A stretch of DNA of 64,000 nucleotides from Macrostomum lignano (Eukaryota): NCBI GenBank assembly GCA_002269645.1, contig NIVC01001566.1:72346-136345 (forward strand), written 5' to 3'. The notes below the pieces were generated by a model, which saw only the letters and a list, made by a program, of their open reading frames with translations, was not told the DNA's origin and did no database searches. Position numbers and translations under genes: made by a program. This document shows positions 2,313 to 52,635 of this stretch, piece by piece. The number at the start of each line of letters is the position of its first letter. The stretch's first letter is position 1.

Positions 2313-3980
2313 TTAGTTGGGTAGCGCCAGGCGCCAGACTAGCGCCATATTTCGCGCCGACTTGTCCACCAGCCAGCGGCCCCACTTGTGCTCCTGGCCG
2401 AGGCCGGCCGCCAGCCTCAGTTCGTCGCCTCCATCATCATCAGGCTCCTCATCTGCTGAGGCTGGCCAGAAAGCCAGCTGATTGACAAAGCCGGCAGCCG
2501 GCAGTTCGAGCAGCCGGCTCAGCGTCATGCCAGAGGACCCGGGCTGGGCGGCCACGCGCCAAAGGCGCACCAATCCGTCCCAGGAGCCGCTGGCCAGCAG
2601 ATCCGCATTCTTCACGGCGGCCAGAGCCGTCACCCAGCGGTCCGGGCCGTGCGCCGCCGCCACCTTGGCCACTGGCCGCTTCTTCTGCATCGACCACAGG
2701 CACAGGCTGCCGTCGCCTTGACCGCTGGCGAATACCTGCTCCGTAACCATGGCAACGCATTCGCAGCTATTCGGCCCGCCGCCGGGCGGCAATTCGAACA
2801 CTAGCTGAGACTCTTCGGCCAGTTTCCATAGTCGCAGAGACTTATCCGGGCCGCCGCAGCTGATGCAGCGGTCCAGGCGCATGGCATCCAGTCCCAGTAC
2901 GGGGGCGCTGTGACCGAACAGGGCCTCAATGAAGCCCAGGCCGCAGTCTGGCGCTCCGCCCAGGCCCCAGTGCCGCACCGTCTTGTCGTGCGAGCCGCTG
3001 AACAGATGCAGCCCGCCGCCGCTGCCGGATCCAGGCGCCCGCCTACGATATGCCAATGCGTTGACGGCCGCCCGGTGACCGCGGAACTGGTGCACCAGCT
3101 GCAGGCTGTCGGCCTGCCACACCAGCACGAGGCCGTCGGCATCGCCGGTGGCCAACCGGGTCTGATCGGAGCTCAGCGCCATGCACAGCACGTGGCCGCG
3201 GTGCAGAACGGCGCCGTCCGCCTCCGCCAGCTGCTGCTCAGTCTTGGCCTTCGGCTTGGACTTTAAGGAATGCCGGCAACGCTGCCGGAGGCCGCCCGGC
3301 ACGTGGGCTACTCGGCGAAGATGCCGACGCTCGCTGTCGCCGTCTTTGATCAGCACAGCTTGCAGAGACCAGCGCGCCACGGAACCGTCCTTGCTGGCGG
3401 TGTACAGAGAATTGTCGCCGAGCTGCACGCAGGTGACAGCCAGGCGGTGCCAGTTCTTTGCCAGACTGACGCTGCTGCTAGCGGCGTCGGCGGCAACGGC
3501 GGCTCCCTCGGCGACGATGGCATCGGCGAAGCTGGCGCGCAGGCGGCCGGCCCGTCGGAGATTCGCCGACTGCAGCCGGGCGCTGACCGCGCCGGTCACG
3601 TGAGCCTCCTCGTCTTCGTCATCATCATCTTCATCCTCGTCGCCATAGCCAAGTCGTTCGGCTTCGCGCGCTTTCAACTCGCCGATGAGCTGCTGGGCCA
3701 GGCGCACTCGGGCCTCCTGCGGCGTCTCCAGCGCGTTGTCGTCGTCGTTCATAGCGGCGCTGTCCAAGTCGGCGGCGGTGGCGACATTGACGGGTTCGTC
3801 AAATTCCGATTCGCTGGTGATTTCCTCTTCAGCTTTGACCTTTTCGGGTCGCTTCTTCTGCTTTTTCGACGCCTGTTGAGACTTGCCGTTGATGCCGGGC
3901 GCAGCGGCTGCCGCAGCGTAACGCAAGCGTTTCGCAACGGAGATCTTTGCCGGCTTTGTCCGTTTGGTTGGATTCGGCAT
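2313..3980 (-). CDS. RRP9: U3 snoRNP-associated WD40 protein (RRP9/U3-55K), single exon, 555 aa
   Basis: Basic/acidic N-terminus (ETPQEARVRLAQQLI), WD40 repeats (GHRAAVNALA, LFSGSHDKTVRHW, IEALFGH, LASGSWDG) and the RRP9-type C-terminal GQEHKWGRW motif. Confidence 0.93.
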   Translation of the reverse strand: MPNPTKRTKPAKISVAKRLRYAAAAAAPGINGKSQQASKKQKKRPEKVKAEEEITSESEFDEPVNVATAADLDSAAMNDDDNALETPQEARVRLAQQLIGELKAREAERLGYGDEDEDDDDEDEEAHVTGAVSARLQSANLRRAGRLRASFADAIVAEGAAVAADAASSSVSLAKNWHRLAVTCVQLGDNSLYTASKDGSVARWSLQAVLIKDGDSERRHLRRVAHVPGGLRQRCRHSLKSKPKAKTEQQLAEADGAVLHRGHVLCMALSSDQTRLATGDADGLVLVWQADSLQLVHQFRGHRAAVNALAYRRRAPGSGSGGGLHLFSGSHDKTVRHWGLGGAPDCGLGFIEALFGHSAPVLGLDAMRLDRCISCGGPDKSLRLWKLAEESQLVFELPPGGGPNSCECVAMVTEQVFASGQGDGSLCLWSMQKKRPVAKVAAAHGPDRWVTALAAVKNADLLASGSWDGLVRLWRVAAQPGSSGMTLSRLLELPAAGFVNQLAFWPASADEEPDDDGGDELRLAAGLGQEHKWGRWLVDKSARNMALVWRLALPN

Positions 3981-6418: not shown

Positions 6419-7735
6419 ATAAGACTCATTGAATCGCTAAGATGCTCATGAAGGATTGCTGAGTCATCAAGGCTTAGGAGATGTTGCTTATGAAGAGTTG
6501 CTGAGATGTCAAGGCAGGGGGGCATTGCTAAAATACTGTAGCTCATGGAGAGTCACTCAGATGCTTTGAGCCAAATCTCATAGGGGGTCTGATATCTTTG
6601 GATTTCAGATACCTGGCTTTCAGGACAGATGCATTTTGCTTTACATATATTTTTTCTTAAAAATTTAAGTGACTTTACAAGGTTAAAACCTATATGTAGT
6701 TTATTTAAAAAATCCTTCCTTTGTTGTTTCCCCAATGGGGGCAAGATAGCTAATCTTAGCTATAACTAACTAAGTCCAACTTTAATGCATATGCTGTCAA
6801 TGGAGCAAAATATATAAACTTAAAGTTTTCATGTTTTGTGAAAGAAGATTCATTTTAATTTTCCAAGACTATACTAAAAATTCAAGCTAAAAAAACAAAA
6901 AAAAGTGCAGAAATCAACAAAGTTTTGCCATTAAGGTAAAAAATTAAGACAAGACAAAATAAAAAAGTTAAAACTAATGACTAAATAATAATGGGCTTAT
7001 ATATAAATACTACCTCTCATAAATATTTAGGTTTAACTAAAAACTATACCTATAAAGGATTTGCTAGCATAAGTAACTTTATACAAAATGAAGCAATTGC
7101 TAGCTTAATAAAAAAAACTAATAAGCATAACCATATCACAATTGTCATGATTGTTAAGATGTATAAATATTGTATTTAGCTTTATAAATTTAGGATTTAT
7201 AAATATAATGCATTTTAATGGTCTATAGTGTTCATTTTTTAATAAAAAAGCTATGGTTATATTAGAGCTTCATCTGAATGTTGAATATGCCTTTTAACTA
7301 CTTTATTAATACCAATAAAATATTAATCAACATAGACAAGCATATGGTATTATGAGCTAAGTTACATATCAAAATGAAATTTAATTGTCATAATAGACTA
7401 AGACCAAAAATCAAGTGCTTATTTATTTTTCATCATTAAAAATAAAATCTATAAAATCATTTATAGTCCTACTTTGCTATTGTAAGCAACCTTTTATTAT
7501 TTGAGGTAATTAAACTAGTAAATTAGCTTGAATATATAATAAGATTGAGAGTAATATAATAGAGGCCAGAAGGTGTCCCAAAAAGGTTGATTTTTAACTG
7601 TCTGCTCCTATTTCCTAGCAAGTGCATATGCTAATAGTCAATAATAAAAGTTTTGTTTCCTGCATTTTTGATTTTGATTGGTGCTTTTATTCATGAGCAA
7701 CAGCATTTAAAACTGGCTGAAATTGCCATTGCAAG

Positions 7736-7947
7736 TGTTGCGTATTGCTATGACTCTTGCAAAGTATAGACTTTTACTTTGAAAATAGTCTATGGTTTAT
7801 GCGACGCGATACAGTACTCTCCTTTGTTTGCTAAGCTTCAAATCTTTTCATTTAGGAGCACAAGACCCTAGGAGCGCGCTGCCGCTAAAATATAGCTTAA
7901 TTTCAAACTACCATAATTCATTGACTTGGCGTTCCTCAAACAAAACA
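7736..7947 (+). repeat. 5' LTR (212 bp)
   Basis: TGTTGCGTATTG...CAAACAAAACA. Differs from the 3' LTR at 2 adjacent bases (GACTCTTGC vs GACTACTGC). Confidence 0.97.
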
Positions 7948-7960
7948 TGGCGACGAGGAT
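7948..7960 (+). promoter_or_regulatory. Primer binding site, complementary to the 3' end of tRNA-Ser(GCU)
   Basis: TGGCGACGAGGAT immediately after the 5' LTR. It is the reverse complement of ATCCTCGTCGCCA, the animal tRNA-Ser(GCU) 3' end as recalled. Confidence 0.8.
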
Positions 7961-8008
7961 AAAAAGCAACTGAGGGTCAAGGAAAATTCCGCACCTGCTG
8001 CCCTCAAA

Positions 8009-11000
8009 ATGGCTCAGTCAATGGAGTACCGTCTTGGTGAGATGCCACTTTCTTACCCAGAGATAGAACAATACTTCAAACGACTTCTGTTCTACCTGGA
8101 GGCAACTGAGAAGAATGAGCAAGCTAAAGCAGTCCTACTGGCTACCTGCGGTGAATCTGCATTCAATCTGGTGGAGGAGCTGATAAAACCAGAAGACATC
8201 ACCAAGGCCGGTGTTACGTTCAAGTCGATTCAGGACACTTTGCTCGAGCACTTCAAACCGAAAGTTCTGCTTCATTATGAGCGACATGTGTTCCATTCTA
8301 CTGTTCAAAAGGACGCGGAGAGCATTACAAATTTCGTTGCACGGCTCAAGCAACAGGCGAACAAGTGCCAATATGGTGAATTGCGCGAAGACCTGATCCT
8401 GTCTCAGTTCATCTTCGGACTTCGTAGTCAGAATCTGTGGCAAAAACTGCTATCCAAAGGCACGCTTGAGCTTAATGATGCTATTCAAGAGGGACTCATG
8501 ACCGAGTCAATTGCAACTGCTACAGACAAACCAGAAACTATCGCTAATGTGCAGAATGCTGGGACATTCTCGAGACCAAGAAGCTGCAGTGCCCAACGCT
8601 CTGTCTCATTCAAGCAACCTCAGGGACATCTGCATAATCAGTCGAGCGGCAAACCTAAAGGTAAAACGGCTAAGTGTCACACCTGTGGGAAATCGGGACA
8701 TCTACGATCAGCATGCAGGTTCCGAGAAGCCAAGTGCCATAAATGCGGCAAGGTAGGACATCTAGCTACCGTGTGCAGATCAAAGGCTATGAACGCAATC
8801 CAACGAATGCCAAGCTGCAGCCCTTCACCAGGGAACACTAGCTCTTACCATCTGGAACTCATTCATGCGGTTAGACAGCCAAAAACGGGTTACTCAGATC
8901 AGTGGTTTGTTTGGTGTCGTCTAGGAAAAACCGAAGTCAACATGCTTGTGGACACCGGCAGCCAAGTAACCGTGGTTCCGGATCAAATCGCCAAGAGCTC
9001 AGGCTTAGAGTTACAGCCAGTCAGCCAAAAACTAAGATCTTACGGAGGTTTTCAAGCTACGGTCACTTCTGTCATCTACGGGGCAAAGCTACAGGTTATT
9101 GGTGGCAAGTCTGCTTCAGAAAACATCTACGTCGGTCATGATACAACAGCTATTCTGGGCATGAACTTCATACCGTCCCTAGACCTAGTGCGAATGGATC
9201 AAGCGGTTCGAGTGTCGAATGAACACAAGTGCCTACCAGTCGTCCGAGATCAAAACTCAAACTTCATTGCCAGCTTTCGCTTACGTTCGGGTGTGAGTAT
9301 GGAAGGCATGCGATTTCCTGCTCGCTCACTTCCTTTCTCCATGAAGTCTATGGTAGAAACCGAACTAAGAAGACTTCTTGCTTCAGGAATCATCTATTCA
9401 GTCAAGAATCCTACTGTTGCAGCGCCAATAGTCCCAGTGGTCAAGCCCGAGGGATCAGTAAGACCTATTCGACTGTGTGGCGACTACTCTATGACGCTCA
9501 ATCGTCTTATTGACGTGGACAAGTACAGGTTTCCGAAAATGGAGGAGATCCTGGCTAAGATTCCCAACGCTAAATTCTATACGGTCCTAGACTTAGAACA
9601 GGCCTTCTTACAGGTGGCTCTATCCCCTGAGAGCCAAGAGCTCACATGCATTTCTACTCACATGGGATTCTTTGCATTCAGATATCTACAATTCGGGATT
9701 TCCGCGGCGCCTCTAATATTTCAGGAAATCATGGACGAAGTTCTTCGGGATGTACCATTTACAGCCTCATATCAGGATGACATCATTATTGGGACTCCTG
9801 AGGATTCAGCCGAAAAACACATGCAGCTGGTTCGTCAAGTCAAGGATCGTTTGGCAAACTGCGGGTTCAAGATTAACCAGAGAAAGTCTCAAGAATGTCG
9901 TAGAGAAGTTCGATTTCTTGGCTTCATTTTGCGCGATGGAGGCATGCACCCCGACCCAGCACGAATGGAGGCGTGGAAGAGGTTACCATATCCAAAAGAC
10001 AAAGACCAACTGCGCAGCGCTCTGTGCACCTTCCGACACTATGGCGTCTTCTGCAAGAACTTTTCAATGATTGCACGACCGTTATATCAGCTGCTGAAGA
10101 AAGGAGTTCACTGGAGTTGGCATGGAAAGCAGTCTGAGGCATTCGACAAGCTTAAGAGCATTATTGCAGGCGGTGTGATAACCGCATACGACATTACGAA
10201 GCCGTTGTACTTGATTTGTGACGCCTCTAAGGATGGCCTCGGGTACGTTCTAGCTCATGATCCAATGCAAAGACAGGTTGTCTGGCTAGGCAGCCGAGTC
10301 CTGACTCCAGCGGAGAGCAACTACGCTAACATTGAGCGGGAGGCGTTAGCAATCGTCGAAGGGACCAGATACTTTTATCAGTACCTCGCGGGTCGAAAAT
10401 TTACCATCATTTCTGATCACCGACCGCTTCAGTACATATTTAATCCGAACAAGGTCTCCGAGCGAGTTTCAGCAAGGATTCAGCGATGGGCATTACTGTT
10501 AAGAGCTTACGATTACAATGTGATGTACGTCAAGGGTGAAAAGATGTACGCTGCAGACACTTTGTCTAGACTTCCATTGCAGTCGGACTCAGCGGATCAG
10601 AAGATCAACCTCCTAGAAATCAATGCACTGGAGGGTTTCGGAAACTCCGAACAGCTACTGCAGAGGATCGTGCGAACTAAAGATTACAAGTTGGACATGC
10701 TCAAGAAGTACATTCAAGACGGCTGGCCTGCTTATACACCACCAGCTATGCTGCCATATGCATGCAATAAGTTGGAATACACACTCCAAAATGGAGTGAT
10801 TTTCAAAGGATTGCGCATCGTCCCACCCTCTAGCCTGAGAAGCGAAATTCTTCAGATGCTTCACGAGGACCACCCGGCATCGTGAGGATGCTACGTCTAT
10901 CCAGACAGTACTTCTGGTGGCCCGATATAGATGCTCAAATCAATGCATTCGTTCAACGTTGTGTTCAATGCCAGCTACATGCTAGGAAAAGAAGCAATGC

Positions 11001-11865
11001 AAATCTGTCGTCATGGCCGGAGACAAAAAGTTTCTTCGAGAGAGTTCACGTTGACATCGCTACTTTCAAAGGTCAACGCTTCCTTGTCCTGGTTGACGCA
11101 TTTTCAAAATGGGTAGATGTACAGTCCGTGCCGTCAATGAAAGCATCCATTGTCATCAGTGAGCTGAGAAAAACGTTCAAGTATACCAGATTGCCGAAAA
11201 ATCTGGTTTCGGACAATGGTGGAACTTTTGTGGCAGAAGATTTCGTTACTTTCCTGCAAGAGAACTACATCGTCCACACACTTACTCCCCCAGGACATCA
11301 TCAGTCCAACGGTCAGGTGGAGAGAGTCATTGAAGAATTGGAGTTTTATTTAAGAAAGTTAAACGCTGGTGCCAATCTTTCTGAGCTGGAAAGGCATTTA
11401 GCAGGATTCTGCCTGTTTCAGAATACGACTCCTCACTGCAATGGATCAATTCCGGCACTTCTGGTGTTTCAGCAGTCGCCCCGAACACGTCTATCAGCCG
11501 TTTGTACAGAGAGGACGAGGCCGGTTCAAGAGCCAGTTCCTGTTTTCGTGCGTGTGGAGCACAAGGAGCAACGGGTCCCCTCTGAGCTGAAGTCTACAGT
11601 TGGTACAAATACTTTCCGAGACGCAGAAGGACGACTAGTGCACCAGTCCGATGCTACTGCTCGTACAGAGGAACTACCGATTGATGATTCGAAGCAGTCT
11701 GGGATCACCCCTCGTGATACTGATGCAACTACGTGCCAAGACAGTGCTACGACAAGTCCAATGCGCCATGCAATGCAGTCGCCTAGGCACAAGGAACACG
11801 GTGTGCTCGAGTTCCGTAGGAGCACGCGAGTCAGGCGACCTCCGGAACGATTGACTTATTACTGA
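8009..11865 (+). CDS. Gag-Pol polyprotein, broken by a 1-nt deletion near 10876 in the integrase zinc finger
   Basis: CCHC x2 (CHTCGKSGHLRSAC, CHKCGKVGHLATVC), protease LVDTGS, RT YQDD, RNase H DASKDG...EREAL, integrase HEDHP(G)IVRM...CVQC and D-D-E core (HVDIA, VSDNG, VERV). ORFs 8009-10885 and 10882-11865 join if one G is restored. Confidence 0.93.
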
Positions 11866-11914
11866 ATTGCTTGAGGTGTAACTTTGAACTGCACTGTATA
11901 AGCATCGGTGGGAG

Positions 11915-12126
11915 TGTTGCGTATTGCTATGACTACTGCAAAGTATAGACTTTTACTTTGAAAATAGTCTATGGTTTATGCGACGCGATACAGTACTCTC
12001 CTTTGTTTGCTAAGCTTCAAATCTTTTCATTTAGGAGCACAAGACCCTAGGAGCGCGCTGCCGCTAAAATATAGCTTAATTTCAAACTACCATAATTCAT
12101 TGACTTGGCGTTCCTCAAACAAAACA
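11915..12126 (+). repeat. 3' LTR (212 bp)
   Basis: Direct repeat of 7736-7947. Confidence 0.97.
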
Positions 12127-36250: not shown

Positions 36251-37081
36251 AAAGAAGCGCCATGTCAGACATGAAAGGTGTCATATAAAAATTAAATGAA
36301 GCTATAGTACAGTGCTGTGCTGGGGAGAATTACTGAGACGTCAAGGCTCACAGAGAATAACTGAGATTACAGGTGGGGGGGGGGTTTCTGAGATGTCAAA
36401 GCAAAAGTCAGAAGCTACTTCAAAGTTCATGTACTTTACTCAATTTTTATTACATTCATTGTTGGCTCGCCACAGGGGGGGCGCTGATAGAAGCAGAGTC
36501 ATGTAAAAAATAAAAGTAGCACTATGTATACATATAAGAAAAGTCATGTCGAAGTTAAAAGATTCATTTGGGAATTGCTACAATGTCAAAGCTTGGTGGA
36601 AATCGTTATAGTGCTGTGATTCTTAAAGAAGGAAACACTAAAATGCCAAGGCTTAGGGGAGAAGAATTGCTGAGATTTCAAGGCTTTAGGTTGGGTTAAA
36701 GTTAGGTTTAGGTCAGGTGTGGGTTGAGGGTTATATTTTATCGGGTTTCAAGGTTAACAGGGGATTTTTTTAGATTTCGAGATTTATGGGGGGCATCGCT
36801 GACATGTCAAGGCTTACGGGGGAATAGCTGAGATGTCAAGGCTCACGGGGGTATAAATGAGATTTCAAGGCTAAAGTCAGAAGCTACATGTAGTTTAATG
36901 AAAACTTTTTATTACATTTTTTGTTGGCTCCTCAGGGCTCACTGATAGAAAAAGCATAATGTAAAAAATAAAAGAAGCTTCATGTCGAAGCGAAGAGATT
37001 CATTTGGGAATCCCTACGAGGGAATCGCTATAACGCTGTAGTAGTGCTATAATGACTCAGAATTACTGAAATTTCAATGCT

Positions 37082-44150: not shown

Positions 44151-44469
44151 GTGCAAATAGAAGTTTACAACATACTTACTTATAGAGTAAGTCTGGAACA
44201 TAGACTATTGTCATGTAAAGGTAACGTGAAGGAGTCCTCAAGTATGCTCTTAAAGCCAAACATTATAACCTCTCTCTCACACTAGTGAAGGAACAGAAAA
44301 AGGAAAAAATCCCCAAGATCCCCTAGGAACTTTGGCTTAAAGTAAGCCACTCTGGGGCGAGTCTAATGACTCTTTCGGGACCGTATAACCCGTATAAAAC
44401 GAAACGGTCACAAAAAGGGGCTGTTACCGTGTTTTTTACCGTTACGGTCACCAGTTACCATTTTTTACC

Positions 44470-45155
44470 GTATTTGTGACTGTTTAGTTCAGGGTCACCA
44501 GGTGACTGTTCAATGTTACCGTACTTTGTGACCGTTTTGTTTAGGGTAACCCTGTGACTGTTCATAGTTACCGTATTTTGTGACCGTTTTGTTTAGGGTC
44601 ACATGTTACCGATCAATGTTACCGTATTTTGTGACCGTTTTGTTTAGGGTAACCATGTGACCGTTCAATGTGACCGTATTTTGTGACCGTTTGTTCAGGG
44701 TCACATGTTACCGATCAATGTAACCGTATTTTGTGACCGTTTTGTTTAGGGTAACCATGTGACCGTTCAATGTGACCGTATTTTGTGACCGTTTTGTTTA
44801 GGGTCACATGTTACCGATCAATGTGACCGTATTTTGTGACCGTTTTGTTTAGGGTAACCATGTGACCGTTCAATGTGACCGTATTTTGTGACCGTTTGTT
44901 CAGGGTCACATGTTACCGATCAATGTGACCGTATTTTGTGACCGTTTGTTTAGGGTCACATGTTACCGATCAATGTGACCGTATTTTGTGACCGTTTTGT
45001 TTAGGGTCACATGTTACCGATCAATGTGACCGTATTTTGTGACAGTTTTGTTTAGGGTCACATGTTACCGATCAATGTGACCGTATTTTGTGACCGTTTT
45101 GTTTAGGGTAACCATGTTACCGATCAATGTTACCGTATTTTGTGACCGTTTTGTT
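44470..45155. repeat. Left subterminal tandem array, 50-51 bp unit built from GTGACCG/GTTACCG motifs
   Basis: GTGACCGTATTTTGTGACCGTTTTGTTTAGGGTCACATGTTACCGATCAAT repeated about 13 times. Confidence 0.95.
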
Positions 45156-45532
45156 CTGTTGTGGAGTTTACTACTTGTCGCTTTCTACCAACTGTTGTCG
45201 TCTTCACTGCATAATAGGCTGCTACTATGTTGCTTAATTTGAGTGCGGCGTGACGCACGTGTTATTGTTGCCTGAATTTTTACTTTACAATTTTACAGAG
45301 TAGCCTCTCCTGAAATAGGTCACATGGATACCCAGTTATATATAGTTAGGTATGGACAAGTGATAGTTATGAATAGGGAAGCAAATTTATTACCTATGCC
45401 CAGGGATACGTTCTCTTTCAAATCAGTATATAAGGAGAAGTGACGGTAACCCACGAAGCAACTGACTAATTTCTCATGAACGTTTGCCACTTTTGCAGAG
45501 GATAAGAATCATTAAGAACAAAAATCTCTATC

Positions 45533-46652
45533 ATGGAAGACCAGCAACGCCGCGCCATTATGAATCGTTTAAGAGTGAAACGATTTCGAGAACGCAAGAC
45601 AGTGCAGCTTCTATTTCAAAGGCGACAACAGTGGTTGCAATCTGGAACGACTGCAATGGGCGCCGCCATTGGAAATCCACAGACGAATCGTGGTAATAAG
45701 CGCCGTCATCCAGACGACGACATCGGTAGCGAAGGTACTCCACAACCGCCATCTACCGGCGAAGCTACTTCACAACCGCCATCTACCGGCGAAGCCTCCA
45801 CCAGCGAAACTGCCAGTGAAGCCGGCGATGCCAGCGAAGCTACCGAAAGCTCTGCCAGCGAAACTGCCAGTGAAGCCGGCGATGCCAGCGAAGCTACCGA
45901 AAGCTCTGCCAGCGAAACTGCCAGTGAAGCCGGCGATGCCAGCGAAGCTACCGAAAGCTCTGCCAGCGAAACTGCCAGTGAAGCCGGCGATGCCAGCAAA
46001 GCTACCGAAAGCTCTGCCAGCGAAACTGCCAGTGAAGCCGGCGATGCCAGCGAAGCTACCGAAAGCTCTGCCAGCCAAGCACCTAGCGACGATGCCGAAT
46101 ACAGCGATGACGGTGACGGCGATGATTATGATTCAGACGACGCTAAACTGCGTAACTTTTGCCAGTTGGCCGCCTATCCTGGCGCTACTGTCCGGCGCAG
46201 CAAATAGTGCGGCATCGGTTTGTCCATCGTGTGCACCACTGTGCGCCAATGGCTTTAACTGGCCAGCAGCCTGGATCGACATGGCGTCAGACAAAGCTGC
46301 AGAAAAAGCTGTGGTGGTCGACATGCTGCAGCGAGTGGCCAAGCAGCTACCGGCACGGGCCGAGGAGCCCAGCAAGATACACCGCTGCCGCATTGTCATC
46401 ACGACAATGATTGCGTACCTGGCGCAACAAAGATCAAAAGGCGCCAGCCATGGTGACACGCCCGCTGAGGCGCAAAAGGCAATGGCCAACTGCCTGCGCA
46501 TGATGTGCGATCGATATGGCCAAACTGTACTGGAGTCCGGCGAGGCGGTGCAACGGTCCGCCAACGGGCCGCCGGTCGCCGTAGTGTACGGCAAAGCGGC
46601 GTGGTTTCGCGAGATGTCTCGGGCGGAGGCCAGCTTTTGGAAGGCCGCCTAG
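45533..46652 (+). CDS. Cargo ORF A: basic N-terminus, 54-bp Ser/Ala/Glu repeats and acidic tract; possibly spliced or frameshifted into a second helical segment
   Basis: ORF 45533-46207 (RVKRFRERK, five ASETASEAGDASEATESS-type repeats). A protein-like continuation (MASDKAAEK...FWKAA) ends at 46652 in another frame. TATATAAG lies at about 45427. Confidence 0.55.
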
Positions 46653-47742
46653 ACCGCCCGCGTCGTGCCGGAGCCCGAGCCGCTGTCCGCTCGCCGTTAT
46701 AGGCCGCGTGGTGGTCGCTCTACCCGCCTGCGGCGATTGTTCACCGCCATGGCTGCACTACTGCATAGCCGACCGGTCTGCGCCTTCGGCATGGCGGACG
46801 CCACTTTGGCAATTTTACTGCAGTATTGGGACATGTCCAGTTAGACCTATATAGGTGAAATTTCAAAGAGCATCCGAGGTGTGGCCAAAAGTTAACGAGA
46901 ATGTAGAATTGAACGTCTCGAATATTAAACTTAAAAAACAAAATAATTGCCTAGAATAGTAGCATCATCTCTATAATACACTTCATGAAACAGCCATTGG
47001 CTTTTTAATTAAATAATACATCGTAAATAGTAATAATAAATAAAATTAAATAAATGAATAAAATAATATTAGTAAATAGTAAATAGTACTTAAATAGTTC
47101 CAACTGTTCAATAACACATTCACGTTACACTTTTGGCCACGTCTCGTAGTTTAACGGCCAGCCAACACAGCTGCATTTATTTTGCCAGCGCCATTTATTT
47201 TGGCGATGACGCATTAATGCGCAGATATTTTTCTACCGCTGCCGCTTGACAGTCTACGCCTGTTAAGTCGTCAGCGTATGTTATTTATATATATGGCCAT
47301 ATATGGCAATGACGCATTAATGCGCAAATATTTTTCTTCCACAGCTTTTATTGTTCTTTCACACTATGTTCTTCCAATTATTAACCTAAGTAGTACTAAT
47401 ACTACCGTGTATGTACTGTGTGTTGCAATTAATATTCATAATTCTACTACTACTACTAATAATAATACATATAGCCCGGTGGCCGCAAGGTTGCTGCAAG
47501 TTATGCGGCGCCTATTTTGGTCAATTCTTTACTATTACTCTGGTCACAGCTGCAGTGTGTGTGTGTGTTGCCTCCTTTGGAGTAACTAATATAAGCGTAC
47601 AGGAAATATGCAGACTCTTCCCTATAGCCCGTTTGCGTACGCAGCTGTTGCTTTCATTCTGATCTGAAGCTTCAAAATTTTAAACTTTTTGCATCTTAAC
47701 GCCTTGCAGCTCCGTACCTGTCCGAGTTTCTTCCCATCGTCG

Positions 47743-48537
47743 ATGTCGGATCACTGGTCTCACGCCGCAACATGCGAAATCTGCAAAGCGCTGGTTCACG
47801 AGAACTGGGCCTTGAGAGCGGAGGTGGAGCGCCTGCGTAGCGGACGACCGGGTTCGCCTGTGTTCGATACCAGCCGCAACGTGCGCTTCCATCGGGCTAT
47901 CGTGCGTTCAGATGTAGTGCCCAGCACTCAAGTGACAAAGTCCGCATGGCCGTTCAAGGACACTCGCTACAGCGATATTGCCGCCAACCAGGCGCGTGAC
48001 TGTGCGCAAGTCTGCGAATCGGAGACTATGGGCCCCGAGAGTCTGCATCACTGGTACGCCGACAACCAGGCGAGTCGGCGTCAGCTGAATCAGCCGGCCG
48101 CGCAGCTGGACAGTGAGGATGAGCAGCAGTCGCGTGACGGGCCTTTGGCAATGTCCACTGAAGCCATTCAAACCGGACCGGCTCAAATGGTGTTGTCGGA
48201 CAGTTTCATAGCAGACTATAACCGACTGCCTGAGGCGAGGATTCCGCAAAACTGCGTTTTTAAGGCTCGAAAGCGGGATGAGCGCATGCAGCTCGAAGCG
48301 CACTGCTGCGTTCAATGCGAGGGTTGGTTTGCCAACCTATCGCCGGAGACGAAGAGGAAACGCCTGCAGGCGGCTGGCCGTCATCGGTCCAACCAACCGA
48401 GGCCAAACTACGACCCCAATTTTTTCCGCATAGAAATGCCGGACACACCCCCAGAGGCACCAATCGATGCGATGAAAGTTGGTAAGCGTCGTCGCAAACC
48501 TCTACAACTAAGAGGTCCGGAACCTCGCAATAATTAG
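47743..48537 (+). CDS. Cargo ORF B: mini CtIP/Sae2-like protein, 264 aa from the first ATG
   Basis: RKRDERMQLEAHCCVQCEGWFANLSPETKRKRLQAAGRHRSNQPRPNYDPNFFRIEMPDT aligns without gaps to the CtIP C-terminal domain as recalled ([21 protein letters not shown]...[25 protein letters not shown]). N-terminal CxxC plus short coiled coil. Confidence 0.8.
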   Translation: MSDHWSHAATCEICKALVHENWALRAEVERLRSGRPGSPVFDTSRNVRFHRAIVRSDVVPSTQVTKSAWPFKDTRYSDIAANQARDCAQVCESETMGPESLHHWYADNQASRRQLNQPAAQLDSEDEQQSRDGPLAMSTEAIQTGPAQMVLSDSFIADYNRLPEARIPQNCVFKARKRDERMQLEAHCCVQCEGWFANLSPETKRKRLQAAGRHRSNQPRPNYDPNFFRIEMPDTPPEAPIDAMKVGKRRRKPLQLRGPEPRNN

Positions 48538-48953
48538 ACAAATAAAGTGATGAAGGACTGCGCTACATCACTAAATTTCTAACCGTACTTAAAAACCGCA
48601 CGTCTGCTATGTGTTTTGGTATAAAACTTTTTCTCGCTCACGACTGCGCTACATCACTAAATTATTACTAACGGTATTTTAAACCGTCCGACATACGTCT
48701 GTCAAGCCGTTGTTCCATTCATTTCAAATGTACCATTGATCACCTTTAATCTTAGTACCTTGTGTAAAACACGGACTAACACTAAACTATAGTTAAACTA
48801 AACTAAACTAGCTAGTACTAGTACCTGCACGCTAAACACGGACTAACACTAAACTAGCAGCTGCACGTTTTTTCTACTATATCTGTACTTTGTAACACTC
48901 AGATTAAACTACATCCTCATTTGCAGCACTGCAGTATTACAATAGAAACCAAA

Positions 48954-50684
48954 ATGCCCAAACCAAGTGACGCTACTACAAAGCCAAAAGAGAAAGGCAG
49001 CAAAACGGGCGCCAAAGGGTCGCGAAAGAGGCCCATCGAGACGGAGCCAAACAATGAAAAAGCGGTAAAAAAGCGCAACAGTAAGTCCAACTTAGCCTCC
49101 GCCGCTGCTAGCGCTACTTCCGCCACTGGCGCATCCACTAATGCTGATGGCGCTTCTATCCCCGCTGGTGCTTCTACCGCCGCTGGTGCTACTGCCGCCG
49201 CTGCAGCTGGCGCATGCGCTAACACTGATGGTGCTTCTACTCCCGCTGGTGCTTCTACCGCCGCTGGCGCGACTGCCGCCGCTGCAGCTGGCGCATGCGC
49301 TAACACTGATGGTGCTTCTACTCCCGCTGGTGCTTCTACCGCCGCTGGCGCTTCTAGCACCTCTGCGACTGGCGCCGGTAAAAAGCCAGCTTCCGGTGGC
49401 CCAGCAGCATACCGCTACTGGGTATTTGAATATGCGCCGGAAGACGGCGGTCGGCTTGGAGTCTATGCCGACAAGTGTGTTGTTACTGACGGCTCAGTAG
49501 ATTCGAGCAAACTGTCAGTTGACGATGATGTCACCATTAGACCGGGAAAGACCGCCAATAGTAAGGCGTACCGCGTGCGAATATGCAAAGGGCCATACCG
49601 CACAAAGGCGGCTGCAGAAGCCGGTGCCAGTGCCTGTCAAGCGGTACACAGGCCGGGTGGCATTAACATGCCTAACGGTTGCGCCACCTGCCAGGCGCTC
49701 AGGCATGAGGTTTTAAACCTCCGGACATCCGCCGAATTGGCGCAGCAGACTGCCGACGGCTACAGGGAAAGCCTGCAACGGCAGAATGAAGACCTGGCCA
49801 AAAGACTCGAAGACGCTGAATTTGAGCGCAATGAGTACAAAGAGAAGTATGAAAGTGCAGCCAATAGAACACGCGAGTTGGAGTGCCAACTCGAGTACGC
49901 ACAGATCGGTGCTAATCCTTCAAGTTCTGCTGAACAATCGGTCGGTGTTCTCGCCAAATATGCTACGGTGTTGCAGGACGCCGTGTTTTCCGCCATCGGC
50001 GTTCTGCAAGGTGCGGTTTCGCAGGATATCGTAGTAGATTGCGTTGCTGACACGATCAGCAGCAGCAGTACGACTGCTGGTGGTGGCGCTTCTGCGGCCG
50101 CCTCGTCTGCAGCTCCGTTGCTGGACGACATGGACCTGCGCGCTCAGATCCGAATGTCGTCAGTGAATCAGCGGAAACGTGAGCCCGAGACGAGGTCCTT
50201 GACAGCGCGCTGTCCCGACGTCGTCGTGTCGGCCACCGACTACGCAAAGATAAAGAATGCCGTGTCCGCCTATGTCAAGGGAGGTTACAGGAGTACCGAC
50301 GCAGATAAATTGCTTCGGACCTTGTACTTAGCAATTTTCACGGACGACGAGCTGACGACCTGCTCTTACACGGGACGTAGGTCGACAAAAACTGGTCCGC
50401 CACCAAAGGCGGAAGTGTCAAAGAGAAAAAAATTCGCCATTAAGGCGTTTATTGAAGGCCTGCAGTTGCCCAACCAAATTCCGGAGAGAAAGTATGCCGG
50501 CGTGTTTAAGCGCACTGGATTCTGTATTGCGCGAAAACTACAAAAATCGCTCAAATTGGCACCCAGCGGAAATGAGGTGGCGACGATCGACATCGATGCC
50601 GATGATGAGGACGCCAACGTTGGCGACAACGGAGATCACAATGACGACGAAGCTGCAGCCTCTCATCCATCTGCAAATCCATGA
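48954..50684 (+). CDS. Cargo ORF C: coiled-coil protein with a probable C-terminal BEN domain, 576 aa from the ATG at 48954
   Basis: Basic NLS-like start, 81-bp Ala/Gly repeats, CxxC plus a long coiled coil, and LLRTLYLAIFTDDELTTCSYTG...KFAIKAFI, which resembles BEN helices. Confidence 0.65.
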   Translation: MPKPSDATTKPKEKGSKTGAKGSRKRPIETEPNNEKAVKKRNSKSNLASAAASATSATGASTNADGASIPAGASTAAGATAAAAAGACANTDGASTPAGASTAAGATAAAAAGACANTDGASTPAGASTAAGASSTSATGAGKKPASGGPAAYRYWVFEYAPEDGGRLGVYADKCVVTDGSVDSSKLSVDDDVTIRPGKTANSKAYRVRICKGPYRTKAAAEAGASACQAVHRPGGINMPNGCATCQALRHEVLNLRTSAELAQQTADGYRESLQRQNEDLAKRLEDAEFERNEYKEKYESAANRTRELECQLEYAQIGANPSSSAEQSVGVLAKYATVLQDAVFSAIGVLQGAVSQDIVVDCVADTISSSSTTAGGGASAAASSAAPLLDDMDLRAQIRMSSVNQRKREPETRSLTARCPDVVVSATDYAKIKNAVSAYVKGGYRSTDADKLLRTLYLAIFTDDELTTCSYTGRRSTKTGPPPKAEVSKRKKFAIKAFIEGLQLPNQIPERKYAGVFKRTGFCIARKLQKSLKLAPSGNEVATIDIDADDEDANVGDNGDHNDDEAAASHPSANP

Positions 50685-50892
50685 GTCGAAGTGTACCAGA
50701 CTGAAATGCAGCCATTTCGGGCATTTTATTATTTACTGGGCTTTTTCTGATCTTATCGGGAATAATGAAAGAAAATGGAGAGAGTGGGAGGGAGAAATTT
50801 GTGTATGCAACATATCATTGTGCTAAACTAAACAAAGCTAAACTAAACCTAAACGTCGCAGTACAATGGGTTTCTAAAACTGCTTAACTTTT

Positions 50893-51467
50893 GGTCGCGC
50901 ACTTCTGCGATGTCCCACTAATTCTAGTTCTTTTTGGCGCACTTCTGCGATGTCCCACTAATTCAACTAGTTCTTTTTGGCGCACTTCTGCGATGTCCCA
51001 CTAATTCAACTAGTTCTTTTTGGCGCACTTCTGCGATGTCCCACTAATTCAACTAGTTCTTTTTGGCGCACTTCTGCGATGTCCCACTAATTCAACTAGT
51101 TCTTTTTGGCGCACTTCTGCGATGTCCCACTAATTCAACTAGTTCTTTTTGGCGCACTTCTGCGATGTCCCACTAATTCAACTAGTTCTTTTTGGCGCAC
51201 TTCTGCGATGTCCCACTAATTCAACTAGTTCTTTTTGGCGCACTTCTGCGATGTCCCACTAATTCAACTACTTCTTTTTGGCGCACTTCTGCGATGTCCC
51301 ACTGATTCAACTACTTCTTTTTGGCGCACTTCTGCGATGTCCCACTAATTCAACTAGTTCATTTTGGCGCACTTCTGCGATGTCCCACTAATTCAACTAG
51401 TTCATTTTGGCGCACTTCTGCGATGTCCCACTAATTCAACTAGTTCATTTTGGCGCACTTCTGCGAT
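50893..51467. repeat. Tandem array, 43-bp unit, about 13 copies, inside the transposon
   Basis: GGCGCACTTCTGCGATGTCCCACTAATTCAACTAGTTCTTTTT, period 43 (50941/50984). Confidence 0.97.
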
Positions 51468-51644
51468 CGCTATGTACCATATAATAATGCATTTTAATAA
51501 TAGCGCGCTTTGCGTATATAAAGCTTAATTGCCGCAATTACTGGTTACTTCACATCTAATATATCACTGCTGATTTGTATTCCTGTTACTTATTTGCACA
51601 TTATTATACTGTTGGTCGATAGTCAGAAAAAACACACAAGATCA

Positions 51645-52320
51645 CAAAACGGTCACAAAATATGGTAACAGTAAACAGTAACATAGTTACCCTAAGCAAA
51701 ACGGTCACAAAATATGGCAAAAGTAAACAGTAACATAGTTACCCTAGGCAAAACGGTCACAAAATACGGTCACATTGAACGGTCACATGTGACCCTGAAC
51801 AAACGGTCACAAAATACGGTCACATTGAACGGTCACATGTGACCCTGAACAAACGGTCACAAAATACGGTCACATTGAACGGTCACATGTGACCCTGAAC
51901 AAACGGTCACAAAATACGGTAACATTGAACGGTAACACGTGACCCTGAACAAACGGTTACAAAATACGGTCACATTGAACGGTAACACGTGACCCTGAAC
52001 AAACGGTCACAAAATACGGTCACATTGAACGGTCACATGTGACCCTGAACAAACGGTCACAAAATACGGTCACATTGAACGGTAACATGTGACCCTGAAC
52101 AAACGGTCACAAAATACGGTCACATTGAACGGTAACATGTGACCCTGAACAAACGGTCACAAAATACGGTCACATTGAACGGTAACATGTGACCCTGAAC
52201 AAACGGTCACATATATGGTAACTATGAACGGTATCATGTTACCTTATTATCATGAACATGAACGGTCACAATAAACGGTCACAAGCATTACAGACCACGG
52301 TAACAAGTGGAACGGTCACA
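51645..52320. repeat. Right subterminal tandem array, 50-bp unit, reverse complement of the left array
   Basis: GACCCTGAACAAACGGTCACAAAATACGGTCACATTGAACGGTCACATGT, period 50. Confidence 0.95.
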
Positions 52321-52429
52321 GCCCCTTTTTGTGACCGTTTCGTTTTATACGGGTAAGGACTCTGGGGACGAAGAGTCGTATTTGAGGCGTGCTTGAGTCT
52401 CTGTCAAATGATTAGTGTAAAGAAACTAT

Positions 52430-52635
52430 ACATGTAGCTTCTGACCTCAGCCTTTGTATCTCAGCAATTCCCCCCGAGACTTGACATCTCAGCAATCCCC
52501 CCCCCAAGACTTGACATCTCAGCAATCCCCCCCCAAGACTTGACATCTCAGCCATCCCCCAGACTTGACTTCTCAACAATTCCCCCCCCCCTGGCCCCAA
52601 GACTTGACATCTCAGCAATCCCCCTCAAGACTTGG
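52430..52635 (-). repeat. Short repeat cluster of the GCTGAGATGTCAAG family, also at about 6450-6530 and 36330-37260
   Basis: GACTTGACATCTCAGCAATCCCCC repeats and TACATGTAGCTTCTGAC, the reverse complement of GTCAGAAGCTACATGTA at about 36876. Confidence 0.8.

Follow-up and report, generated by a model that had tools for sequence, protein, structure and literature searches.

DNA transposons depend on host double-strand-break repair, and gene-carrying DNA transposons are known, among them the Pack-MULEs and the gene-capturing CACTA and Helitron elements. Foldback-type elements include Drosophila FB, which makes a 9-bp target-site duplication (TSD), and Caenorhabditis elegans Tc4. Shortened class II elements usually arise by internal deletion through abortive gap repair, as with Ds from Ac and with deleted P elements. 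The repair proteins MRX-Sae2 process hairpin-capped breaks at long inverted repeats and some transposon excision sites; Sae2 belongs to the CtIP/RBBP8-Sae2-Ctp1-COM1 family (PF08573), in which Ctp1 of Schizosaccharomyces pombe has about 294 amino acids (aa). We know of no CtIP or Sae2 gene carried as transposon cargo, full-text literature searches found no description of such a transposon, and mobile elements with a repair-pathway regulator of their own are, to our knowledge, essentially undescribed in eukaryotes. Here we describe a 64,000-nucleotide stretch of the flatworm Macrostomum lignano (the window; assembly Mlig_3_7, GCA_002269645.1, contig NIVC01001566.1, record positions 72346-136345, same orientation), in which a 7,965-bp transposon with arms of about 0.7 kb spans positions 44389-52353 and encloses ORF2, an open reading frame (ORF) for a CtIP/Sae2-like protein. 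A reading of this DNA made earlier without database searches (the original prediction) had proposed a small CtIP-like gene inside a DNA transposon, lacking a cyclin-dependent kinase (CDK) site and either uncoupled from the cell cycle or a dominant-negative decoy. We consider it probable that the window holds the long form of a non-autonomous, foldback-like terminal inverted repeat (TIR) transposon with an old, constrained CtIP paralogue that likely works, and that shorter copies on other contigs are its deletion derivatives.

A near-duplicate of the locus on contig NIVC01001708.1 (L006) provided direct evidence of insertion. Such a locus exists because Mlig_3_7 contains 180 Mb of duplicated blocks at least 95% identical, which derive from the extra large chromosomes of the DV1 line (PMC5730564). 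Up to position 44388 the window is matched by L006 at 96.9% identity, and the match resumes at 52354, the two alignments overlapping by 3 bases in L006. The empty site reads ...GGGACCGTA-TAA-GGACTCTGGGG... (TAA at L006 15320-15322) and the occupied site in the window reads ...GGGACCGTA-TAA-(7,965 bp)-TAA-GGACTCTGGGG... The product of a Sec61-beta gene lying 4.6 kb upstream of the transposon is also encoded on NIVC01001708.1. L006 has the textbook form of an empty site, the target duplication being 3 bp, or else results from a precise excision, and in either case the element is mobile. The features that delimit it are the following.

44386..44388, no strand: left TSD, TAA, present as a single TAA in the empty site of L006
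44389..44424, plus strand: left TIR, 36 nt, CCCGTATAAAACGAAACGGTCACAAAAAGGGGCTGT, same as the right end
44389..45163, plus strand: left arm, made of the terminus and 13.5 copies of a 51-bp subterminal repeat rich in ACGGTCAC/GTGACCGT
50897..51467, no strand: 43-bp tandem array, 13.4 copies, at the right end of the element interior and also found in the two short copies (L007 and L008, below)
51635..52353, minus strand: right arm, about 12 copies of a 50-bp subterminal repeat followed by the 36-nt terminus (52318-52353)
52354..52356, no strand: right TSD, TAA

Exactly two occurrences of the 23-mer CCCGTATAAAACGAAACGGTCAC exist in the window, inverted to each other at 44389 and 52353, against zero expected by chance. 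Similarity between the arms ends sharply at the termini, and the outer flanks matched no better than shuffled controls. TIRs extended outward and a longer TSD (ACTCTGGGG) were rejected, their scores being no better than those of shuffles. The TIR- and TSD-bounded element of the original prediction was thus borne out by perfect 36-nt termini, a TAA on both sides and an exact empty site.

No Pfam transposase family was matched in any open segment of the element that was scanned, so the element is non-autonomous or encodes an enzyme that escapes recognition. It would have inserted into one of two duplicated blocks about 97% identical, and without a recognisable transposase it would have moved in trans. 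The PIF/Harbinger superfamily is marked by a TWA (TAA/TTA) TSD, a DDE_Tnp_4-type transposase and a Myb-like partner ORF; it was rejected, as the TSD is TAA at this site but CTA at a second one and neither a transposase nor a Myb-like protein was matched. We class the element as a foldback-like class II TIR transposon whose superfamily is unassignable without a transposase. Like FB and Tc4, it has long inverted arms of tandem subrepeats, a variable centre, and deleted and longer variants that coexist. The likeness to Drosophila FB is one of architecture only, the TSD being 3 bp (TAA, CTA) instead of 9 bp, and MULE/Phantom or Tc4-type enzymes could not be related to it, no transposase having been found. 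With the Pack-MULE, CACTA and Helitron captures it shares a TIR-bounded, non-autonomous organization and a host-derived coding interior.

The cargo gene and its nearest signals are listed below.

47704..47709, plus strand: TTGCAG acceptor-like hexamer, 33 nt upstream of the ORF2 ATG, candidate trans-splice site
47743..48537, plus strand: ORF2, CtIP/Sae2-like gene, 264 aa (ORF call, Pfam, phmmer, alignments, AlphaFold2 model)
48208..48522, plus strand: SAE2/CtIP C-terminal domain, ORF2 aa 156-260 (tblastn to host exon 3, alignments)
48541..48546, plus strand: AATAAA poly(A) signal, beginning at the fourth base past the ORF2 stop

ORF2 is intact from its ATG at 47743 to the stop ending at 48537, in agreement with the original prediction, and its frame stays open over 289 codons, more than any other open stretch in this part of the element. 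A phmmer search with ORF2, exhaustive over 1.84 billion representative sequences, gave 42 matches at E ≤ 1e-3, and in all of them ORF2 aa ~150-260 paired with the extreme C-terminus of the matched protein. P0001, a host protein of M. lignano, ranked first (E 3.7e-27), and vertebrate CtIP was matched at E 1.8e-7. Several matched proteins are named in their sources 'DNA endonuclease RBBP8' or 'Ctp1 C-terminal domain-containing'. Ten of the matches were scanned with Pfam; eight of the nine that are not from M. lignano passed the SAE2 model, three of them also CtIP_N. Word-indexed homologue searches found no match, either with ORF2 or with a three-sequence flatworm profile, even though P0001 was in the collection. 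PDB sequence searches returned no match for ORF2, nor any solved CtIP C-terminal domain. By homology, ORF2 belongs to the CtIP/Sae2/Ctp1 family, the match being far beyond chance.

About 105 C-terminal aa of ORF2 align with the family along their length, and the family motifs R-x4-R-x2-L, CxxC, RHR, NF(F/W) and P-x-T-P/Q are all present. ORF2 reads R..ER..L..HCCVQC, with the CxxC at C189/C192 (nt 48307-48318), then RHR at R213-H214-R215 (nt 48379-48387), PNFF (N226-F227-F228) and PDTP (P233-D-T235-P236), each where the original prediction had placed it. The CxxC, RHR and NF(W/F)...P-x-T columns are invariant or nearly so across 44 aligned sequences and stand in conserved order in ORF2, which keeps every family-invariant column (R176, R181, L184, C189, C192, R213-H214-R215 and P233). 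In the AlphaFold2 model, built on this alignment, the C-terminal domain is confident, with a predicted local distance difference test score (pLDDT) of 80-95 over aa ~180-240, and most of the middle region, aa 40-140, scored below 50 and is presumably disordered; a single N-terminal helix was modelled at aa 12-32 (21 residues, pLDDT 66-80). ORF2 has the layout of a small Ctp1-type protein, like that of S. pombe, in which a disordered linker joins a short helix at the N-terminus to a folded C-terminal domain. No CtIP_N match was found in ORF2. A CxxC-x-AL-x-HE motif common to the N-terminus of ORF2 and to ORF3 was dropped, as the BLASTP similarity was not significant.

The original prediction had left room for ORF2 to be the only CtIP homologue of the worm. 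A canonical host CtIP was found elsewhere, at two loci.

L003 10001-13072: host CtIP Mlig004387g2, three exons
L004 10001-13315: host CtIP Mlig004387g1, three exons

P0001 is the product of the first (PAA54340.1, BOX15_Mlig004387g2; 54% identity to ORF2 over 108 aa in phmmer). Its cluster mate P0043 (Mlig004387g1, 481 aa, partial) has an N-terminal coiled coil of about 55 residues. Acetyl-CoA synthetase and EMP24/GP25L genes flank Mlig004387 at both loci, which lie on two contigs, and the synonymous divergence (dS) between g1 and g2 is 0.007; they are the ordinary host CtIP in its two duplicated blocks. ORF2 is 55.6% identical to host exon 3 over 108 aa (tblastn, E 2e-32). The likeness is confined to the C-terminal domain, encoded within the last exon of the host gene, and only one 56-nt stretch of 80% identity is left at the DNA level. 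ORF2 is intronless, and over its first 150 aa it bears no relation to the host protein. Unlike ORF2, which lies in a transposon, the other members of the family are found at host loci.

Over 103 aligned codons, non-synonymous divergence (dN) between ORF2 and the host gene was 0.40 and the proportion of synonymous differences (pS) 0.71, which is saturated; the dN/dS of about 0.18 or less sums both lineages and is, with a saturated dS, an upper-bound style estimate only. With P0002 as outgroup, 11 changes were assigned to ORF2 and 7 to the host gene. P0002, the second-closest relative of ORF2, is a 315-aa CtIP on a JGI/IMG metagenome contig of 1603 bp. It has an N-terminal coiled coil, T-P at the position of human T847 and a K-R-R-R-x-P-L tail as in the M. 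lignano proteins, and probably comes from another flatworm. Judged from these substitutions, the ORF2 domain has evolved about as slowly as that of the host since a very old duplication, and it is chiefly this comparable pace that points to a functional protein encoded by ORF2 now or until very recently. Pack-MULE-type captures are recent fragments of high identity, whereas here a complete, constrained ORF shows saturated dS against its host parent, and the host is an animal. The case is unusual in three respects: the animal host, the complete constrained ORF, and a cargo taken from a pathway on which transposons depend. It is also a clean one, with an empty site that proves insertion, a host gene identified separately and a cargo domain as constrained as that of the host.

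Further copies of the element were reached through its third ORF. ORF3 retrieved P0044 (PAA66355.1, BOX15_Mlig024753g1), a 616-aa BEN domain-containing protein annotated at this very locus, and the 90% cluster of P0044 holds two further members on other contigs, which led to L007 and L008. Since copies were reached only through annotated proteins, the copy number of the long form and of ORF2 is a lower bound.

L007 9022-13193 and L008 8257-12289: short copies, about 4.0-4.2 kb, same termini and arms
46191..49274, plus strand: long-only segment of 3.1 kb, with ORF1b, ORF2 and the first 107 codons of ORF3; a 10-nt microhomology marks its boundaries

There are at least three copies at two independent sites (contigs NIVC01001566, NIVC01002788 and NIVC01001309), and over the 1,616 nt that they have in common they are 99.3-99.8% identical. 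The flanks of L007 and L008 are the same, with a CTA to either side of the element, and their surroundings are 97-98% identical; the two represent one insertion present in both duplicated blocks. Both lack window 46191-49274, and tblastn with ORF2 found no match in either. They share one junction, ...CCTGGCGCTACTG|CCGCCGCTGCAG..., at GGCGCTACTG, where the first 219 codons of ORF1 (to nt 46189) are fused in frame to ORF3; in L007 the fusion is one continuous ORF of 657 aa. As in Ds and deleted P elements, the short copies differ by one internal deletion with its junction in a short direct repeat. Unlike those cases, the 'full-length' form still lacks a transposase, and the deletion makes an in-frame ORF1::ORF3 that is intact in L007 and annotated as a transcribed gene.

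The annotated gene Mlig024753g1 lies entirely inside the transposon (window 45533-50684). Exon 1 of P0044 corresponds to the beginning of ORF1 and is followed by ORF3 from nt 49275 on, and the implied intron (46190-49274) would enclose ORF2. We rejected a real intron around ORF2, since its ends are a non-canonical GT..CT, the 10-nt microhomology GGCGC(T/G)ACTG lies at its boundaries and the 'splice' of P0044 is identical to the junction of the short copies. Four 54-bp coding repeats are missing from the same gene model through a second annotated gap. The M. lignano annotation pipeline mapped de novo transcripts with BLAT at 80% identity or more (PMC5730564), and the intron is best explained by a transcript of a short copy mapped onto the long one. 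The GenBank gene Mlig024753g1 is really a transposon ORF, and its 'intron' the deletion junction of other copies.

That annotation of the interior as a host gene is what could be said for ORF2 as the worm's ordinary CtIP, merely bracketed by repeats with no mobile element involved. L006, however, lacks exactly the 7,965 bp and has one TAA, the same TIRs bound copies at another site, the canonical CtIP lies elsewhere, and the annotated intron is non-canonical and coincides with the deletion junction of the short copies. The empty site and the presence of the same element at a second site refute this explanation, to which we give practically no weight; the refuting case named in the original prediction was thus not encountered.

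Which form came first bears on the origin of the gene. Recent passenger capture, in which the short 4-kb form is ancestral and the 3.1-kb segment was copied, for instance through template switching in gap repair, from a host locus that is not annotated, would make the CtIP-like gene a hitch-hiking host paralogue without a transposon history or role. The absence of the segment from two of the three copies fits this, as do the insertion of the short form before the L007/L008 block was duplicated, the absence of the long copy from the duplicated block L006, the junction microhomology of the kind seen at template switches, and the difference of just 3 of 1,616 nt between the window copy and L007. 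The 3' end of the segment is not foreign, however. ORF3 contains 81-bp units, of which -1 (49194-49274) and 0 (49275-49355) are identical at 79 of 81 positions, and -2 (49113-49193) is just 80% identical to both. Units -2 and -1, the in-frame start of ORF3 and its K/R-rich N-terminus lie in the long-only segment, and unit 0 is in all copies. A recent foreign capture would not bring along an old, in-frame, diverged tandem copy of the adjacent sequence, which favours the long form as ancestral. Nor was any M. lignano protein like ORF2 outside its C-terminal domain found in the searched collections. The closeness of the window copy to L007 is also an unreliable clock, because rates are unequal: L007 has no private changes, and L008 has six non-synonymous and two synonymous ones, which fits its truncated state, only a 338-aa C-terminal ORF being annotated there. 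Capture of the gene, and with it the hitch-hiking status of ORF2, therefore appears rather unlikely to us. With the long form as ancestor, a single deletion from GGCGCTACTG in ORF1 to the matching unit end would explain the short form in one step, and the CtIP-like gene would belong to the older and fuller version of the element. L007 and L008 differ by 0.5% in the coding part (8/1616) and by mismatches of ~1.4-1.5% in the block flanks, which may reflect selection acting on the BEN-type ORF, or gene conversion between the copies.

Several observations weigh against an ancestral long form with a working CtIP paralogue. The direction from long to short appears fairly well favoured, but by structure and not by divergence: private changes over the 1,616 nt number 3 in the window copy, 0 in L007 and 8 in L008, an unresolved star, and with unequal rates the attempt to polarise the two forms by sequence divergence was abandoned. 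The count of copies between the same TIRs, which the original prediction called for, gave three, but only one of them, in this window, carries ORF2, so that a single copy of the CtIP-like gene is known among those reached through annotated proteins. The superfamily is unassigned and the dN/dS is of the upper-bound kind noted above. The Pfam SAE2 model did match ORF2, at aa 203-235, but with 18.1 bits (E 0.0057) it fell short of the gathering score of 19.8; this score just under threshold and the missing CtIP_N match set ORF2 apart from other family members. The syntenic host CtIP scored lower still (13.4-14.3 bits), so the cut-off does not discriminate in the M. lignano lineage. ORF2, in 264- and 282-aa versions, is absent from the GenBank annotation and from a collection of 15 billion proteins, neither of which therefore gives a sign of its expression. 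The published annotation dropped transcripts that overlap repeats (PMC5730564), which makes absence from it weak evidence. Finally, three residues conserved in most CtIPs are replaced in ORF2 (V->A before RKR, C->A before the G/S-RHR motif, and P->R).

These replacements, together with the lack of annotation and the single known copy, would suit a decaying relic, a non-functional remnant still open by chance. We hold this to be very improbable: 289 codons have stayed open despite saturated synonymous divergence from the host gene, all family-invariant residues are kept, the branch is of similar length to that of the host gene, and a start context and poly(A) signal are present. With every invariant residue retained and the domain evolving slowly, ORF2 is most likely a working protein, as far as its coding sequence can tell.

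The original prediction had also drawn attention to the phospho-acceptor positions, and read them correctly. At the position of human T847-P, ORF2 has N-Y-D-P and no S/T-P; at that of T859-Q it has D-T-P. Among the 44 aligned sequences, 41 have S/T-P at the position of T847 (human) or S267 (yeast), and the three without it are ORF2 and the two M. lignano host CtIP copies, which read V-Q-A-P (PPVQAPNFF). ORF2 thus differs from the family in a state that it shares with the M. lignano host gene only. Since the host copies also lack S/T-P, the missing T847-type CDK site is, by this alignment, a trait of the Macrostomum lineage and not special to the transposon copy. A 'cell-cycle-uncoupled' protein, one option of the original prediction, does not follow from it either: the host shares the state, and the T-P at the T859 position, common to ORF2, the host gene and many invertebrate CtIPs, is possibly a minimal proline-directed kinase site. 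The Macrostomum host CtIP lacks a T847-type site that is otherwise near-universal, 40 of 41 aligned CtIPs from other organisms having it, and resection control in M. lignano may differ from the textbook CDK switch.

Under the reading that we favour, ORF2 would be an old, divergent paralogue of host Mlig004387. Its protein, to go by the invariant residues kept in the C-terminal domain, would still contact Mre11-Rad50(-Nbs1) (MRN), and would then either stimulate that complex or compete with host CtIP. The short copies would have lost 3.1 kb, including the CtIP-like gene, at the 10-nt microhomology, fusing ORF1 to ORF3. They inserted without the gene, which is therefore not needed in cis for insertion; the ORF2 product could act on them in trans. 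If it acts on MRN, it would offer a natural experiment on a CtIP C-terminal domain without the CDK switch, and a way to study how a flatworm that regenerates and is ready for transgenesis chooses among repair pathways.

A role in transposition itself is a bolder proposal. As an accessory factor, ORF2 might recruit or activate MRN for hairpins or transposase-blocked ends, or bias gap repair towards homologous recombination, by which the element would be copied back; alternatively it might be a dominant-negative decoy. A constrained domain within a mobile element, the long inverted arms and the known hairpin processing by MRX-Sae2 all speak for such a factor, and for the decoy the 21-residue N-terminal helix without a CtIP_N match, which could alter oligomerisation. 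Yet a deletion derivative was able to insert and persist without the gene, the element lacks its own transposase, and the 'CDK-uncoupled' argument fails with a host CtIP in the same state, so we regard an accessory or decoy function as clearly doubtful. Similarly speculative, on the sequence comparisons made here, is that the long form kept its own CtIP-type Mre11-Rad50 cofactor over a long time, acting on hairpins at its long inverted arms or on protein-blocked or gapped ends, or skewing donor-site repair; were this true, it would be the first transposon-encoded end-resection factor.

The element interior holds four ORFs, all on the plus strand. Besides ORF2, these and an upstream motif are as follows.

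45533..46207, plus strand: ORF1, 224 aa, basic N-terminus, acidic 54-bp coding repeats
46281..46652, plus strand: ORF1b, 123 aa, no recognisable family
48954..50684, plus strand: ORF3, 576 aa, K/R-rich N-terminus, 81-bp Ala/Thr/Gly coding repeats, coiled coil
47208-47223 and 47311-47326, no strand: two copies, 103 bp apart, of the motif GACGCATTAATGCGCA with the perfect palindrome CGCATTAATGCG

ORF1 starts with a bZIP-like basic stretch, RRAIMNRLRVKRFRERK. ORF3 had a weak Pfam BEN-domain match (aa 452-498, nt 50307-50447, E 0.025), and the UniRef name of its annotated product is 'BEN domain-containing protein'. Look-ups of the exact products of ORF1, ORF3 and one neighbouring ORF found no match. 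TTGCAG acceptor-like hexamers end at 45498, 47709 and 48926, each 25-45 nt ahead of an ATG, that of ORF1, ORF2 or ORF3 respectively. In M. lignano 38.8% of genes are trans-spliced and polycistronic precursors are made (PMC5730564); the layout of the three ORFs is compatible with separate spliced-leader trans-spliced cistrons of a polycistronic unit. The GACGCATTAATGCGCA copies sit in an AT-rich region about 450 bp upstream of ORF2, and the motif with its palindrome looks like a dimeric transcription-factor site.

The repeat content of the window is high, with a gypsy element and satellite arrays besides the transposon. One further gene was recognised by its product.

2313-3980, minus strand: WD40 ORF, 555 aa, product annotated verbatim on NIVC01001566.1

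A young Ty3/gypsy long terminal repeat (LTR) retrotransposon lies at 7734-12126, with 214-nt LTRs that are 99% identical and ORFs for gag-protease-reverse transcriptase-RNaseH and integrase at 8009-11865. It is missing from the duplicated block, where its flanks meet at L006 3615-3617, and gives the two blocks a second insertion polymorphism. About 21 kb (~16700-37760) is taken up by satellite and tandem arrays that show strong GC skew, including a higher-order repeat of ~3.5 kb at 28.5-36.3 kb; the duplicated block holds just ~1 kb in this region (L006 7176-8216). Directly to the right of the transposon insertion site is a 29-bp tandem repeat, ATCTCAGCAATCCCCCCCCAAGACTTGAC (52449-52635), with about 5 copies in the window versus ~1.7 kb in the duplicated block (L006 15490-17200), and an inverted copy related to it was found at 36788-36892.

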